Shown here: positions 2,163 through 62,470 of the stretch, in pieces
Position numbering within the stretch: the first letter of the stretch is position 1
How the letters are laid out: each line of letters begins with the position of its first letter
DNA from: Podarcis liolepis
Taxonomy: Eukaryota
NCBI GenBank assembly: GCA_965112155.1
Contig: OZ218102.1
DNA: 64,000 nt
Reading direction: 5' to 3' (one strand)
Translations under genes and position numbers: made by a program
The notes under the pieces: model-generated
Databases searched by the model: none
What the model saw: only the letters and a program-made list of their open reading frames with translations
What the model was told of the DNA's origin: nothing

Positions 2163-2267
2163 GCAGCTCAACCTGTGGATTTCTCCTTGATTTACTCGCC
2201 TAATTGTCCTTTTTCTCCTCCAGAGTTCACTGGCCTCCCTTTTAAATACTTTCCCTCTAAAACTCAT
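2163..2267 (-). CDS. DOCK10: DOCK10 alternative coding exon 1b (DOCK10.2 N-terminus), 35 codons MSFRGKVFKREASELWRRKRTIRRVNQGEIHRLSC
   Basis: It matches the human DOCK10.2 N-terminus as recalled (MSFRGKVFKREPSEFWKKRRTVRRVIQEEFHRFSS), with the same 35-aa length. ATG is at 2267 and a phase-0 donor TGC|GTATGT is at 2163/2162. Strand and phase are the same as exon 1a. Confidence 0.93.
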
Positions 2268-32849: not shown

Positions 32850-35668
32850 GTATATTTGTTAGGCTATAGTTCCGTCTCCCTGGCAGTATCCGAACAATAT
32901 TAAGTGCCCCCCACAACCCCCTCCCATGCAGCTACAGTAATGGGGAGAGATTAATATATGTAATTCATCTAGATGATTTAAAAACATAAGAGCTTCCAGA
33001 TGGGGAGGAGATGTTGGTAACTATTGTATCACATACCTTTCACTGGTTTTAAATGGTTTTGCATTTCTACTTTTTATTCTAAGCAAGGAAGTAATTCTAT
33101 GGAAAAGTGTTCTATTATACATTCATAGCTTCCACATTAATAATAAGTTTTCAGCTGATGTCAATGAAAACAGACAAACTGAATACGTTTGGTGAGAGCT
33201 CCTCATGTGCCTTTGAGCATTCAAAAAAAGACCACATTTTGTCACAAGTAAGTAGCTCTGTGGTTGAATTTCACAGCTCTCCAGGGAAGGCTTACCCAAA
33301 TAGGGAGCTACTCCACCAACCTCAATGTATGCTCAGCCAAATAAATTGTTTCAAAACATTGTTACGTATGCCACCCCAATCTCTGCTGAATGGCTACATG
33401 AGATTCCAGGGGTGCCAGATGCTCACCCAAGGTTGTGCTAACCAAACCTAGTGCAAGACGGCACCTTTTTCTTGCTGCACAGCCTGCCACCATGACCTTG
33501 GCAATGTCTCGCCTAGTTGATGATTTCCATTGACTTGCTTCCAGCACCTTTTGCCATTCTTAACAACTTCTATCTCAGTTGAGGCCCTGGCATCTTCCCT
33601 TCGATATTCCAAATATTATCTAAATTCTACAATTTATTCAATTCTATCATTCACTAACATTGCACCCCGAAACCTGTAATAGTATCTATTTTCTGGCCAA
33701 ACACTTGCATTGTAAAATGCTTTCCGTGTAAGAATATGAAAGCAATATGTAGGTTGTTCATGTGCACTATTTCAGTGTAATACCTGTGTTTTAGAATTTC
33801 TGCTCAGGAAGCTCACCTGTGATGCATGTCATTAAGAAAGAAGATAAGCCCTGAATGGAGGCCAAATTTTGGCTAAACAATTCCTCAGTGCTAGGTGTTA
33901 GTGAAATTGCCTTTCTCAGCAGGCCTTCTCAACCATGGCATCCCAATCAGGGAATGCTCTTCCCAGAGAATTCCATCTTTTCCCCCTTCTGGTGCTATGA
34001 TAATGCATTTAAATTTTCCCAAACCTTTTGCACATAATTTTAGTCCTACTGATTGTTTTTTATCTGGCTTCTAAGGTCTTGCTGCCTTTTAGTTCTTGTG
34101 TTCACTGCGATAATCTGGATTTGTATTGTTTATTTTCACCCTAATGCAAACCATCCTGGAAATTAATTCACCTTAGTTAAACCATCCTGGTATAAATATA
34201 TCTGTAATAAATCAATTACAAACAGAAATGTTCATTAAAAGAACGTGAAATTTTGAAATTTGCAAAGACAGGCCACTGCGGTCCATAAAGAGAAATCCTT
34301 CCTAAGGCAATTTGTGCTAACAATGGTGCTAATAGTAGTATCTGGGTGATACTTAGAGGATACCTGGAATATCCTTTGTTAAAACAGGGAGTTAGCCACA
34401 GAGACTGCACAGTCCACACTTGTACCACAATAGTCCATGTCAGCTGTCTAGACTGGCAGAACACAAGTGAAAGCTAAACATGTATTCTGCAGGGACAGAA
34501 TGTGCTGATATCCAATATGAACCATGTAGGCATAAGGTATGAGTATGGGACTAAAAACACACTTGTCCCCTTTTACATTCCATATATCTGAATGTCTATG
34601 AATAATTAAGAGGCTCTTTGCTATGGAACAGCATTCTGGACTATCTACTCAGGTGCAGTGTGCTGCATTAACCTAAATGATATTCACCGATACTTTACCC
34701 TGTGGGGAAAGATGTGCATAACATGTAGAACTGAGCAATATTAACACGAGGCAACATCATACCTGCCTTGAGACTTTGCAATGTACTAGTGCATCTGAAA
34801 ACACTGTGCTGTGGTCATGGTAACTGGAAATAAAATGCTGAGAACTAAACAATCAAGACCATTCTTTTTTATACACTAATCAGAAATAAGAAGAAATTCA
34901 GTTGAACTGTTTTGGGGAATGGAAAGGGGAGCAGGAGGGTGGTCTCATTTCATTGTGCTCTTACTCTGAAATCTTCTGCTTGAAAAAGCCAATTCTAGCC
35001 AATACCTAGTTTAAATTGGAGGTACATCTCTGAGTCCAAGTCACCATGATTCTTTTCAACCAAAGCAAAATAAATACAAAGAGATCTCTTGTATTCATTC
35101 ATAATCTAATAAGTCACTCTTAATGTGGAAAAGCCTACTGGCAGGGTAAAGAAATCTCTAGCTCCCGTAAAAACAAAAAACAAAAAAAACAAGAACACCT
35201 TTAAGACTAAAAGGAATCATTTGCAACAATTGGCTGTGAGGAACTATGGGAAGGTGCTAGGAAATCACTTTGCTCTATAATATGGCTGTGTCTATACCAC
35301 TGAGGCAGAAGTTTTGAAGGAAGATGACAGAAGCACTATAGAATTCAAAACAAATTATAGTCAAAATAAAATGATGCTGTTTCCAGCAACTAGAACAAAA
35401 TGCAGAAAGAAATCCTGTCAGATAGCAAAATGCCCTTTTCTCTATTGCATACAGACCTTTCCTAGTTTCAGCTGCAGAGAAGTGGAAATTGCACTCTGTT
35501 AGGTAACAGGCAGAATTTCAATTAGAGGGTTTCACAGAGTTTCAAGCATGTTAGCAAATGCTCTTTTCTCCTCTTCTCCCCCACTCTCTATCTCAAGTCA
35601 AGAAATCACAAAACAATTGTCCTAAAACCCCCTCTCAGCTGTCACTGTATGCAAAGAGTATACTGTAC

Positions 35669-35830
35669 CATTATGATGAGAGTTCTGGGTCTGCTCATTT
35701 CATCATCACTATCCAGAGGCAGGATTTCATGTGACAATTCCTCTTGCCGTCTTCTACAAATATGTGCACAGTTCCTCTGTACCACTGAACGAAAGGCTTG
35801 AAGCAGAACAATGCTGGCAGCACAGCCCAT
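35669..35830 (-). CDS. DOCK10: Candidate third DOCK10 first coding exon, 54 codons MGCAASIVLLQAFRSVVQRNCAHICRRRQEELSHEILPLDSDDEMSRPRTLIIM
   Basis: It is on the same strand as, and lies between, exons 1a and 1b. The start has a strong Kozak context (GCT ATG G) and an MGCxxS acylation motif. There is a phase-0 GT donor ATG|GTACAG, which is weak. The surroundings are TE-poor. Confidence 0.7.
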
Positions 35831-38324
35831 AGCTGCATCCTGAAGCCTACAAAATAACTTCTATGTTTATGCTATGTTTGAAAAACAGTAGCTCCTTGTC
35901 CCTGAAAACAGCCTACAGTGCAGCTGCAGCCAGCCAGCTCGCTCCAATCATTTCCTTGAGCTGCAATCATCTGATCACAACCAAATAGCTTGGATGCAGA
36001 TATAGGAAAGATTTGATCCACTGAAACAACATAACACACACAGAGAGAGACACACACACACACAGTATTAAGGTCCTTTTTTTGGAGTAACTGTTTCTGA
36101 AAACACAGAACAATTTTTTTTCTTTAGCAATAATCCTCCTCCTCCTCCTGATCCCAGATTCAGAGAGCTGAAAAGTATAAACCAGCTGTTTAATAAAAAA
36201 AAATCTGGCAAGACTCATTTAAATGCCTGTTAACAATCACACAGAGGAAAATCAGCAATGACAACCATAAGTAGGATTAAACAGTGATGACTAAAAATGA
36301 AATACTTTGTTGTATTGCTTTATTAAGGATGAAAAATAAAATCCAGCTTCTGCTTCATTGAGGCACATAGGCTGGTACCTTTGGATGAAAGTGTTTCATT
36401 TTCTCAAACGAAATTAACATGTCAAAGTATTAAAACATTATTGGGGGGGGGTGCAAGATAATAACAATAAATGGGTTGCACAGCTCATGCCCGAACATCA
36501 ATGGCTTCATGAAAAACACCACTGTTTAGCTATGAAATGCTTCTCAAGACTAGTTTTTTTGTGAGTGATCCCACACAAACACTTCTGCAGACTGTGGCAT
36601 TTTTTTTATACTGGCAGAGGCAGCTTGTGTGTGGCAAATCTTTCTAGGAGGGCTCACTTCCAAGGAATTAAGCACAGATTATCTCTCCACCCACCCACCC
36701 CCACAGCCACCACCACCCCTCAAAAGAAAAAGAAAAAAGCAAGGTAACCAACTGGGAAGCATTAGTAAATGTTTTATTGCTAATAATTAATGCAGAGAAA
36801 GAAACAGGGTTTGAGCAGTTAACAACTTAGTATTCTAACTGCTGGCAGAGAAGTAATTGAGAAAGCTGCTAAAAAGAGGTGCTTAGAAACCACATGACCC
36901 CGTTTGGATAAATATCAAGATCTTAATGGTACAGTTGTGTGAGGTAAGAGTACTTCAGGGAAAGTTGGCACTAAGCCTCGTTTCTCACAAATGAAGAGAG
37001 CTGCGAGTGTTGCAAGGAAGATGTTTTCAGAAGGAACAGCATTCTTGTTTCTATGCTTATTTTCTTACTATCTGCAGTCACATCTGTCTTCACTTTTAAA
37101 ACATTGTTTCTGTCTACACACATGCGCGTGCACACACACACACATGGCCCTACTGCTTTTGTAGGCAGTGGGAGCCTTGCCATTCACTTTCATGGGGACT
37201 TGAGTAAGCCTGTAATTCCTGTTGATGTAATCTTTGGAACGGCTGTTTCATAGAATGGATTGTTTAAAAAGAGAATGGGGCTGCTAACACTGTTCTCCGG
37301 AACCATTTTACACAGGGGTTGATTAGGATTTAATTGCTCAGTAATCTGTCACAATATGGCAGCATTTAAATGAAAATATTTACCAGGGCCATTAAATGGC
37401 TCGCTTTTTTTTAAAAAAAAAGGCCTCCTGCCCACTGCCAAATGTTTCTCTTTGCTTGTATCAAGAGCGAACTGACTGCAGTACTTTGATCTATTCTCTC
37501 TCGCTCTGTCATGTATGCATATATGAGAGGCAAACAGGCATAGTAAACAGCATTTGCATCTATCCGCCTTGAGTTTTGTTAGCATCCTTCCAGGAAACGC
37601 TTTGCTCCCCCCCCCCCCAAGTCATCTCACTAGAAAACTCCTTCTCTTGAATCATGATCTGGCGCATAGGAAAGTTACACGTTAGAAAAGTCCAAGGCAT
37701 ACTTTTTTGTGCTTAGCAGTTTCATTTCTTCAAATACACTTGCAGCAACACAGTGCTGTCATTCCAGCTTCAAAATGGGATGCCCTGCTGCCTCTTGCCT
37801 GCCCCACTTGTCTTTTCATTACTTTCCTTCTGCACATTAGGATGAAGCTGACCCTTTTGGGAGATAAGAGACTAAAATAGTTATCATTGCTGGTCTTAAT
37901 AGCACCAGTCTGGGTTTGACTAACTTCCATTATGGTGTATGTAGTTTGCTCTTCTAGTGTCTGCTGCATGGCCTTGGGCAATATTAATGTCCCTGGCATG
38001 ACAGGCTGCTGCTGTTATTTTACTCATATCATACTGGAGTGCTTGGAGTTTGGTTCCTATGGCAACAAGGCCCAATTTCACCATGCAACTGGATGCCAGA
38101 CAATTCTTTTCCAAATCCCTTTAAAAAACTAGTGGAGGAAAATTCCCACAGAACTGAACAGTCCTGGATCAGGTCCATTCTCTTTAAATGCTTTAATAAG
38201 GAGACAGAGAAGAATTGCTCGAGATACGGCTAGGAAGCAGCTGTGGCTTATAATCACTATAAAGAAGTACAGTATGAAGAGAACAAAGCCTACCCCAAGG
38301 GAACAAGACAAACTCTTTGTAATT

Positions 38325-38763
38325 CATAGAACTGTAGAATTGTAGAGTTGGAACGGTTCCTGAGCACCATACTCCAACCTCCTGAAATGCAGGAATCTCA
38401 ATTATAGTATCCATGACAGATGGCCATCCAACCTCTGCTTAAAAATCTCCAAGGAAGATGAGTCCACCACCTCCTGAGAGAGTACATTCCACTGTTTGAA
38501 CAGCTCTTACTATCAAAAAGTTATTCCTTAAGTTTAGTTGGAATCTCATTTCTTGTAAATTGAAGCCATTGGTTCGGGCTGTTCCCTCTGGAACAAGAGA
38601 AAACAAACTTGCTCTATTTTCCATGAGACACCCCTTCAGGTATTTGAAGATGACTATCATAGCTCCCGTCAGTCTCCTCTTATCTGGGCTAAACATATCC
38701 AACTCCCTCAACCATTCCTCATAAGGTTTGCATTCCAGACCCTTTATCATCTTGGTCACCCTG
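38325..38763 (-). mobile_element. CR1 LINE 3' fragment
   Basis: ORF 38439-38849 contains YEEWLRELDMFSPDKRRLTGAMIVIFKYLKG...RTNGFNL, and there is a CR1-type 3' end. Confidence 0.88.
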
Positions 38764-39326
38764 ATGTGTGGGTGACAAGCCAGAGGAGTTTTGTGCTTCA
38801 GACTAAGGCAACTGTAGGCCAAATGGGTTGCAGAAAAGGAAAGCAGCAACTCCGCTTAGTTACTGTTAACCAGCCATTTATTTACTGGGTATCTTACAAA
38901 ATTATCTTTATACAGGCAGCAATGTATAAACTAGATGTGGAGATCTGGAAGGGCCCAGTTAATAATCTACTGAAGACTTCTTCAACCTGGTGTCATCCAG
39001 GTAGTCCAAACTGGACTACAATTCTTTTCATCTCTGGCCAGCATGGCCAATGCTCAGGGATGCTGGCCACAGTAGTCCAAAACATCTTGAACAAACCAGG
39101 TTACTACCCAAAAGGTAGGATGATCCTTTCACCCAGATCCATCTAGGCACATGCCGTTTGGACTATGGTGTTCTGGGGCATCACACTTTAAGAAGGAAGG
39201 AGGCAACCTGGAAGGGATGCAGAGGAATGCAAAATGATGATGAGCACTGTGGCAAGCAAGTCATATGTCAAAAAGTTGAAGGTGTTGGGCATGTTCAGTC
39301 TGATAAAAAGAAGATTGGGGGAAACA

Positions 39327-42181: not shown

Positions 42182-43959
42182 TTTATTTATATCCCGCCCT
42201 CCCCAACCGAGCCGGGCTCAGGGCGGCTAACAACAGTCAAATAACAATCAAATAATAACACATTCTAAAAATATTTCATTATAAAAATTAGTTAAAATCA
42301 AATTGATGGCAACCGATTAAACAAAATTCTGTGCAGGTTGCCAGAGGAGGGAGTCAGGCTGCGCCCTGACCAAAAGCTTGGCGGAACAACTCTGTCTTGC
42401 AGGCCCTGCGGAAAGATGTCAGATCCCGCAGGGCCCTAGTCTCTTGTGACAGAGCATTCCACCAGGTTGGAGCTGCAGCCGAGAAGGCCCTGGCTCTAGT
42501 TGAGGCCAGCCTAACCTCTCTAAGGCCTGGGACCTTGAGGGTGTTATTATTTGTAGACCGTAGGTTTCTCTGTGGGGCATACCAGGAGAGGCGGTCCCGT
42601 AGGTACGAGGGTCCTAGGCCGTATAGGGCTTTAAAGGTTAAAACCAGCAACTTAAACCTGATCCTGTACTCCACCGGGAGCCAGTGCAGCTGGTATAGCA
42701 CCGGATGAATGTGATCCCGCAGCGAAGACCCCGTAAGGAGTCTCGCTGCGGCATTCTGCACCCGCTGGAGTTTCTGGGTCAGTCTCAAGGGCAGCCCCAC
42801 GTAAAGCGAGTTACAATAATCCAGTCTGGAGGTGACCGTCGCATGGATCACAGTGGCTAGGTCAGGGCGAGAGAGATAAGGGGCCAACTGCTTAGCTTGG
42901 CGGAGATGGAAAAATGCCGCCTTTGTTATAGCTGTAATCTGCGCCTCCATAGAAAGGGAGGTATCGAAGATTACACCCAAACTCTTAACGGACGGTGCTG
43001 GCACTAATTGCACCCCCGCAAGAGATGGGAGTTGCCCCCTCGATCCCATATCGTCCCGCCCCAGCCAGAGGACCTCTGTCTTCGAAGGATTTAACTTCAA
43101 CCGGCTCCCACGTAACCATCCAGCCACAGCTTCCAGACATCTGGTCAGTGTGTCTGGGGCCGAGTTAGGATGGCCATCCATCAACAGATAGAGTTGGGTG
43201 TCATCAGCATACTGATGGCAACCCAGCCCAAAACTCCGGACAAGCTGGGCGAGGGGGCGCATAAAGATGTTAAAAAGCATCGGGGAGAGAATCGCACCCT
43301 GAGGCACTCCACACACCAAGGAGTGACGCGATGACAATTCCCCCCCAAGCGCCACCCTCTGTCCCCGATCAGAGAGAAACGAGCGCAGCCATTGAAGGAC
43401 TGTGCCCTGGATCCCCACGTCGGCAAGGCGGTGGTCCAGGAGTTCGTGATCCACCATGTCAAAGGCTGCTGACAGATCTAGAAGAATCAGCAGCCCCGAC
43501 CCGCCTCGATCCAGCTGCCTACGGAGATCATCTGTTAGGGCGACCAGAGCCGTCTCGGTCCCATGACCAGCACGGAAGCCAGACTGGAATGGATCCAAAG
43601 CAGATGTTTCATCCAGAAACCTACCAAGCTGTTCAGCAACCGCTCTCTCAATCACCTTACCCAGGAATGGAAGATTCGAGACCGGGCGGTAATTGGATAG
43701 ATCTAAGGGATCTAACGATGTTTTCTTTAAGAGCGGACGCACCACCGCCTCCTTCAGTTCCCCTGGGAATATCCCGGTGCCAAGGGACAAATTGATGATA
43801 TCCCCCAGGGGGGCCCGCACCTCGTCTGGACACGCTCTAATCAGCCATGACGGGCACGGGTCAAGAGGACAGGTGGTGGGCTTTCCAGCTTGGAGGAATC
43901 TGTCCACATCGGCTGGAGATATCCGGTCAAAGTGGTCCAATTTAAAGGCAGAATGCTTA
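42140..43959 (-). mobile_element. Young 5'-truncated L2 LINE with an intact reverse-transcriptase-to-C-terminus reading frame
   Basis: Uninterrupted 528-codon ORF 42354-43940 with RT motifs (NYRPVSNLPF, QSGFR, LLDLSAAFD, GVPQGAILSP, YADD) and the L2 C-terminus (LHWLPV, RAFS.AAP.WWN). It has an (ATT)n tail and a 13-bp TSD GAGAATATTTATT (42127-42139, 43960-43972). Confidence 0.95.
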
Positions 43960-61529: not shown

Positions 61530-62470
61530 GAACGGGAGGCGCTCTGAACGCTCGACAGCGCTATATACATGGCCAGGTCTCAATACTATTGAAGGGGACA
61601 CAAGGAAACAACGGCCTTCCGATCCAAGACAGACGCGGCTCGTCGCGACAGAAAACGCCGGGACTCCCCGCGAGCCACAGGAGGCGCTAGGGCTCCCTCC
61701 GTCTCCCCCACTTTGCGCCGCTGCATCCACGTCTCCCCCTTCCAAGCCACATGGTACGCGCGCCCTGCCAAGGGATGCCAGCGCGCGAGATGGGACAGCG
61801 CGAGTTCATTGGCGGCGCCCGGGGGGGAGACGGGACGACGCTTCTTCGCGCCTTTCCCGCGCTCTCCAGAAGAGGCGAACTGAACTCACCCTCAGCCGGA
61901 GCCGGCAGCGGCTGGCGACGGCGGCGGCTGCGCTCTGGCGGTGCTCGGACGCCAAGCTGGGTCGTAGCAGGCTCCGGGTGAATCTCCGCGTTTTCTCCAC
62001 AGCCATGAGAGGGTCAGAGCGGCTGGCAGGAAAAGTCCGGCGGCGCAGACTGGCAGCGCTCCCGCCTCTCAGCCGCGTTCAGGAAGCGGAACTCAGGGCT
62101 TGCTTGCTTCTTCTCGCTTTCCCCCCTCCGCAGCTCGAAGGCGTGACACGCGCGCTCCCCCCCCCCCCATTCACCTCCGCGGCGCTTTTCTCCTTTTTTT
62201 GGGGGGGGGGGTGCGTCGCAAGGCGAGGCGCCCAAGTTGGCAACTTCAGAACGACCGGCGGGAAAGCTTCCCCGCCAGCAGCCCAGCCGCCTCTTTCTCT
62301 CTCTCTCGCACACGGCTGCCTTGGCCGAGCGGCGTCTAGTCAGCGCCTCATCGTTGCTCCCCGCAACAGGCCGAGGCTGTCAGGGTTCCTAGTTCGCTAC
62401 TGGAAACATCGGGGGCCTCGGGGCAAATGCCCCCTAGAATAAGCAGGAGGGAGCCCCCACACTCCGCAGG
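61530..62470. promoter_or_regulatory. CpG island / promoter of DOCK10 exon 1a
   Basis: There is an abrupt rise in GC and CpG density (many CGCG and GGCGGCGG) spanning exon 1a and its upstream region, in an otherwise CpG-depleted window. Bounds are approximate. Confidence 0.9.
61890..62006 (-). CDS. DOCK10: DOCK10 coding exon 1a (DOCK10.1 N-terminus), 39 codons MAVEKTRRFTRSLLRPSLASEHRQSAAAAVASRCRLRLR
   Basis: The translation matches the human DOCK10.1 N-terminus as recalled (MAGERTRRFTRSLLRPGQAAELRHSAASAAAV...). ATG is at 62006, the exon is 117 nt, and it is followed by a consensus phase-0 donor AGG|GTGAGT at 61890/61889. It lies in a CpG island. Confidence 0.95.

Follow-up and report, generated by a model that had tools for sequence, protein, structure and literature searches.

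A conserved third first exon of DOCK10 in the lizard Podarcis liolepis with a predicted dual lipid anchor

A 54-codon exon in DOCK10 of the lizard Podarcis liolepis appears to be a deeply conserved, mutually exclusive third first coding exon of this gene, and the peptide that it encodes would supply the protein with a dual lipid anchor. Judging from sequence comparisons, we consider this the best explanation as a whole, with a probability of roughly 0.7. The exon lies in a stretch of 64,000 nucleotides that we refer to as the window, and it had been proposed earlier in an annotation made from the bare sequence (the initial annotation). We call it the MGC exon, after the Met-Gly-Cys with which its peptide begins.

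Results

The MGC exon stands between two known first exons of DOCK10

The MGC exon is placed between DOCK10 exon 1a and exon 1b, all three being on the minus strand (Table 1) and all three having phase 0 at their 3' ends. It opens with an ATG at 35830-35828 that carries G at both -3 and +4, and its codons run from MGCAASIVLLQAFRSVVQRN to PRTLIIM; read without splicing, the frame reaches a stop and is 62 codons long, ending at 35642. The peptide begins with MGCAAS, continues with a hydrophobic and basic stretch containing Cys21 and Cys25, then an RRR patch, and turns acidic in its second half. On re-reading, each of the sequence features given in the initial annotation (the ATG, the 54 codons, the phase-0 GT, the motif and the second GTACAG) was correct, and so was its statement that the phase is shared with the known first exons. 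Its caveat that the donor is weak also stands: in the lizard the last codon, ATG, is followed by GTACAG, a poor match to the consensus.

Going by the human isoform, we take exon 1b to be the DOCK10.2-type first exon. Exon 1a, which starts at 62006 with MAVEKTRRFTRSLLRP..., is the DOCK10.1-type first exon. It lies within a CpG-rich stretch (GC 0.56), a setting that fits the published placement of the DOCK10.1 promoter in a CpG island (PMC7551865), and GC around the MGC exon is low, at 0.40. Poly-C and poly-G runs are found directly upstream of the exon 1a start codon (region 61890-62300, minus strand). Gly2 is absent both from exon 1a (M-A-V) and from exon 1b (M-S-F), in line with the earlier claim that neither known first exon has the MGxxxS motif. 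The MGC exon is the only one of the three with Gly2-Cys3, and thus the only one with an acylation signal.

Table 1. Features of the window that bear on the DOCK10 first exons
Feature	Position	Strand	Support
Probable third (MGC) alternative first exon of DOCK10, coding part, MGCAAS N-terminus	35669..35830	minus	54 codons; 50 homologues
5' splice donor GTACAG, phase 0, weak consensus match	35663..35668	minus	17 homologous products joined at the same boundary
Internal GTACAG after codon 16 (boundary 35783/35782), encoding conserved Val-Gln	35777..35782	minus	sequence
Out-of-frame upstream ATG with A at -3; 47-codon overlapping ORF	35695..35838	minus	sequence
DOCK10 exon 1a, coding part (MAVEKTRRFTR...), 39 codons, GTGAGT donor after 61890	61890..62006	minus	orthologues P0037 and P0043 spliced to the same exon 2
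DOCK10 exon 1b, coding part (MSFRGKVFKRE...), 35 codons, GTATGT donor after 2163	2163..2267	minus	sturgeon P0054, same exon type spliced to exon 2

The exon is spliced to DOCK10 exon 2 in other vertebrates

With phmmer, the 54-residue peptide gave 22 matches among 1.84 billion representative proteins, nearly all of them aligned from residue 1; with two word-indexed searches and two cluster look-ups added, the total came to 50 homologues. In 17 of these the peptide is joined, at the position of lizard Met54 (...LIIM or ...LIVM), to QEKPK/RLLEPLDYE, which is the start of the DOCK_C-D_N domain (Pfam E 1.6e-31), that is, of DOCK10 exon 2. Spliced models of this kind are present in Ensembl or UniProt for birds (pheasants, Phasianinae; turkey, Meleagris; emu, Dromaius), turtles (painted turtle, Chrysemys; desert tortoise, Gopherus) and mammals (platypus, Ornithorhynchus; opossum, Monodelphis; goat, Capra; horseshoe bat). 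Others come from NCBI: Phaethon ('DOCK10-like'), Molossus ('dedicator of cytokinesis 10') and the Weddell seal Leptonychotes (XP_030876208). The teleosts are represented by Myripristis ('Dedicator of cytokinesis 10') and Salvelinus (XP_023833928). Finally, three run-assembly contigs of 940-1405 nt (P0004, P0025 and P0032) encode the spliced product and must for that reason derive from cDNA. Nineteen sequencing runs contained the stretch: none is on record as RNA, and 13 have small contig sets, a feature that may hint at transcriptomes but does not establish them as such.

The remaining homologues are read-through ORFs on genomic DNA. Here the codon that follows the exon is Val (GTN) in 27 of 34 cases, showing that the GT of the donor is conserved. 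The second GTACAG, after codon 16, was considered as a donor and rejected, since all 17 spliced homologues are joined at codon 54/55 instead; this hexamer simply encodes a conserved Val-Gln. The initial annotation had proposed a third DOCK10 first exon in frame with exon 2 and had preferred the donor at the end of the 54 codons, and both proposals are borne out by these orthologous products. One mammal-like contig of the cDNA type (P0032) has the junction ...TLIM-EKPRLL, two residues shorter than the other spliced forms, which suggests alternative donor or acceptor use in one species.

In emu and seal (P0037 and P0043) the same exon 2 follows a first exon of the 1a type, and in sturgeon (P0054) one of the 1b type, which indicates that three mutually exclusive first exons are an old vertebrate feature. 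Exon 2 itself was not detected in the 64-kb window, where we looked for its LDYE motif. A DOCK10 fragment from the gecko Sphaerodactylus townsendi (P0040) reaches exon 2 from yet another first exon, which encodes only MALDMGKE; a search for MALD, the start of this peptide, gave no match on the minus strand of the window.

The exon is under strong purifying selection

Across the homologues, identity falls sharply at the proposed donor: for distant pairs it is 0.58 within the exon and 0.07 over the 12 residues past the donor, a drop that marks the exon boundary. Among 15 amniote pairs the exon is 88% identical, as against 77% for the next 95 constitutive residues, which implies strong purifying selection on the exon. 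Identity of the lizard peptide to the turtle and bird copies is 94-96%, and 94-98% when other sauropsids are included; it is 81-93% identical to those of mammals and 43-63% identical to those of teleosts, and in the sauropsid comparison the lizard frame has neither a frameshift nor a stop. The conservation check that the initial annotation had called for thus came out in its favour, the frame being kept in sauropsids, mammals and teleosts when compared at the protein level.

Four residues, M1, G2, C3 and S6, are invariant in all 51 sequences, from teleosts to mammals, and every one of these sequences fits the motif of N-myristoyltransferase (NMT). Position 7 of the homologues is I, V or L, never Pro. 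Likewise invariant are R14, C21, S33 and T50, and the SRPRT block is nearly so. We regard it as almost certain that vertebrates have and use this exon, and its use in P. liolepis, as judged from the sequence, is very probable.

The peptide begins with a predicted dual-acylation signal

NMT recognises Gly at position 2, a small uncharged residue at 3 and Ser or Thr at 6, with Pro excluded at 7, and G-alpha-i/o/z, Lck, Fyn and Yes are dually acylated at a Met-Gly-Cys start that supplies Cys3. The lizard MGCAAS has Gly2, Cys3 (small and uncharged) and Ser6; the MGxxxS motif with Cys3, on which the initial annotation had built its proposal, is the one kept in 51/51 sequences. We therefore regard the N-terminus as probably lipidated, by myristoylation and palmitoylation, in so far as this can be predicted from the motif.

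The residues that follow may assist in membrane binding. Net charge is +4 over residues 1-30 and -4 over residues 31-54, and the hydrophobic moment is 0.5-0.7. An AlphaFold2 model built on a 19-row alignment places a helix at residues 4-33 (pLDDT about 60-70) and disorder beyond, with a mean pLDDT of 60; at this low to moderate confidence the model backs helical propensity only. The amphipathic stretch described earlier is plausible on these values, though its support is weak. Searched by sequence against the PDB, the peptide had no match with E below 1.7. In the full-length structure of DOCK11 the first named ordered segment (AWS1) begins at residue 39 (PMC13663769), from which we infer that the first-exon peptide would be a free leader able to reach the bilayer.

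It is rather unlikely that the exon is a real first exon whose product is not lipidated, or whose main role is a different one, the leader being regulatory or protein-binding, or the exon mainly supplying a tissue-specific promoter, the role that the literature gives to the first exons of DOCK9 and DOCK10. In such a leader, the invariant RNC..IC cysteines and the SRPRT.I.M tail would be the candidate elements. In favour of this account, conservation reaches far past the first six residues (R14, C21, S33, T50 and the SRPRT block), which implies that something besides the acylation signal is also selected. The first exons have moreover been described as sequences that 'lack recognizable functional domains' and may serve expression control (PMC7551865), and Pfam returned no family for any of the three first-exon peptides, that of the MGC exon included. 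It is hard, however, to explain otherwise why M-G-C-x-x-S has been kept in 51/51 sequences over >400 million years, and in the DOCK9 paralogue as well, and why it is identical to the motif of proven dual-acylated proteins. Lipid anchoring remains our preferred reading of the peptide.

The Met-Gly-Cys is most likely the N-terminus of the isoform

An acylation signal of this type acts at the extreme N-terminus, as it does in G-alpha and in Lck, Fyn and Yes. If the exon were instead an internal cassette, spliced downstream of exon 1a by way of an AG 9 nt before the ATG, Met-Gly-Cys would be internal and not myristoylatable. The lizard sequence does have this AG, after a pyrimidine-rich run, and the phase-0 frame of exon 1a would stay open through these 9 nt. 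A sheep model (P0078) reads ...QQQR-DAA-MGCTAS..., with exon 1a joined at the equivalent site, and the DAA before the Met is identical in the lizard, in a genomic ORF from a related sauropsid (P0081) and in the sheep model. The sheep model is nevertheless doubtful: it is entered as 'hypothetical protein, partial', is unreviewed and lacks a continuation into exon 2. Further against a cassette, 14 database models and three cDNA-type contigs begin at the Met of the MGC exon, where a longest-ORF rule would have extended them had exon 1a been upstream in the same frame; the flanks differ in fish; and the strict invariance of G2, C3 and S6 would have no obvious reason at an internal position. We consider a cassette exon improbable. 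The Asp-Ala-Ala codons ahead of the start (window 35832-35839) may have been conserved as Kozak or 5'-UTR sequence, or they may belong to an acceptor of the cassette type.

How often such an exon would turn up by chance was estimated from the window. On the gene strand, 210 open stretches of 30 codons or more begin with ATG and have a phase-0 GT; the NMT motif occurs in two of them and an MGC start in one, which is this exon. Two further MGC-type ORFs are on the opposite strand, making three in the whole 64-kb window. The combination of ORF and motif, taken alone, is weak evidence and not beyond chance; the MGC exon stands above chance because it is conserved across species, not because of its pattern. 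It is accordingly very improbable that the lizard stretch is a chance or decaying intronic ORF with expression lost: about three MGC-type ORFs with a phase-0 GT are indeed expected per 64 kb by chance, and the donor is weak, but an unconstrained sequence of 162 nt would not have stayed 94-98% identical to sauropsid copies for >250 million years.

Some features of the surrounding sequence deserve mention. An out-of-frame ATG stands 8 nt before that of the MGC exon, with an ORF that stops within the exon, and, were it part of the 5' UTR, it would compete with the MGC start for initiation and may act as a brake on translation of this isoform. A compound (TG)n(TC)n microsatellite lies about 220 nt upstream of the MGC ATG (window about 36040-36075, minus strand). 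Farther upstream, an uninterrupted ORF of 528 codons (42354-43940, minus strand) has a reverse-transcriptase domain (Pfam RVT_1, E 4.7e-37) and represents part of a LINE within the intron that separates the MGC exon from exon 1a. An ORF of 136 codons (38439-38849, minus strand), at the upstream edge of the stretch that the initial annotation had seen as free of repeats, has no match in Pfam and presumably resembles the conserved C-terminal tail of ORF2 of a sauropsid CR1-type LINE.

A homologous exon is found in a sturgeon DOCK9

One of the proteins related to the MGC exon, from sturgeon (P0011), belongs to DOCK9. It begins MGCTTS...RNCGYIC and goes on to AKPKVIEPIDYENV, which is DOCK9 exon 2, and its PH domain matches that of DOCK9 (PDB 1wg7) with 279 bits. 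Residues 1-35 align with the DOCK10 exon at 42% identity (E 9e-10), and no alignment is possible over the second half of the peptide. As this DOCK9 carries a homologous exon, the module probably predates the split between DOCK9 and DOCK10. In P0011 the MGC exon is present twice in tandem (residues 1-54 and 71-124) in near-identical copies, and the record is flagged UNVERIFIED_CONTAM; the tandem copies are either a real exon duplication or an artefact of the assembly or model. A search for further DOCK9 copies with residues 71-124 returned only P0011 itself, among proteins of 378-1202 aa and hence in a set without full-length DOCK9. Human DOCK9.2, we assume, also begins MGCTTS.

No DOCK11 counterpart was present among the phmmer matches, and human DOCK11 has a single first exon (PMC7551865). 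The initial annotation had suggested MGC-type termini on both DOCK9 and DOCK11: for DOCK9 one sturgeon protein agrees with it, and the DOCK11 part is unsupported.

Discussion

Altogether, these comparisons suggest the following mechanism for DOCK10. Transcription would start at a non-CpG promoter of its own, closely upstream of the MGC exon, to give an isoform that begins Met-Gly-Cys-x-x-Ser. Once the initiator Met had been removed, N-myristoyltransferase would attach myristate to Gly2 during translation. S-palmitoylation at membranes would follow, on Cys3 and possibly on the conserved Cys21 and Cys25 as well, as happens in G-alpha-i/o, Lck, Fyn and Yes, and the predicted basic, moderately amphipathic helix (residues 4-33 or so) would raise the affinity for membranes. 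Once lipidated, the leader would keep this Cdc42/Rac exchange factor membrane-bound, together with its PH and DHR1 domains or independently of them. Promoter choice would in this way set the localisation of the protein, with the MGC isoform constitutively membrane-tethered.

In its wider form the proposal concerns both paralogues. There is perhaps an even chance, on the sequences at hand, that DOCK9 and DOCK10 inherited from before the vertebrate genome duplications an alternative promoter and first exon with a myristoyl-palmitoyl anchor, and that promoter choice switches these proteins between a form that is cytosolic and can be recruited and one that is tethered to the membrane at all times. 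Such a switch would have been overlooked because the literature works with two isoforms, because the first exons were stated to have no functional domains and because constructs were tagged at the N-terminus.

Two DOCK10 isoforms are known to arise from alternative transcription start sites (PMC4434814), and DOCK10.1 and DOCK10.2 have been described as mutually exclusive first-exon isoforms by Alcaraz-Garcia et al. 2011, as cited in PMC4434814 and PMC7551865. Like theirs, the MGC exon is an ATG-bearing, phase-0 first exon of the same gene that is spliced onto the common exon 2, and first exons of both types are in the window; unlike theirs, its peptide carries an acylation signal, is unrelated in sequence and is longer (54 codons, against 39 and 35). 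The searchable DOCK10 papers give DOCK10.1 and DOCK10.2 only, with no mention of the MGC exon. The promoters of DOCK9.1 and DOCK10.1 are in CpG islands and those of DOCK9.2 and DOCK10.2 are not (PMC7551865). DOCK9.2 (RefSeq NM_001130048, named in PMC7551865) is a product of a different gene, but the low GC around the MGC exon resembles the position of its promoter off CpG islands.

Parallels to the proposed anchor also lie outside the DOCK family. G-alpha-i/o/z (MGCTLS, MGCRQS) and the SH4 regions of Lck, Fyn and Yes share the Met-Gly-Cys-x-x-Ser at the extreme N-terminus. There is no homology past these six residues, however, and in DOCK10 the predicted signal comes from an alternative first exon and would be attached to a protein of ~2,200 residues already equipped with the lipid-binding domains PH and DHR1. 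Sperm hexokinase HK1S offers a precedent for the principle, since there too an alternative 5' exon brings in a fatty-acylation signal and moves an otherwise soluble enzyme to membranes (PMC4736023); the protein is unrelated, and its acylation was shown by experiment whereas that of DOCK10 is predicted.

The MGC exon is already included in automated gene models (Ensembl/UniProt and NCBI) of many vertebrates and is in this respect less novel than the initial annotation implied. What is new is the functional reading, together with the absence of the exon from the DOCK10 literature. Within the searchable literature we found no relevant report on lipidation of any DOCK-D protein, looking for myristoylation, palmitoylation and myristoylome data.

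An HA or FLAG tag at the N-terminus would block N-myristoylation. The DOCK10 and DOCK9 constructs in the literature carried N-terminal tags of just these two kinds (PMC4434814), and in published constructs of this design the signal would be destroyed. For the same isoform, assays that count DOCK10.1 and DOCK10.2 alone miss the MGC transcript.

By which route the DOCK-D exchange factors reach membranes is an active question, with the PH domain, DHR1 and feedback from active Cdc42 under discussion (PMC13663769). These factors work only at membranes, and a lipid-anchored isoform, if it exists as predicted, would be a second, promoter-controlled route there. It could then account for what is isoform-specific in the biology of DOCK10, and of DOCK9.2, in lymphocytes, neurons and migrating tumour cells.
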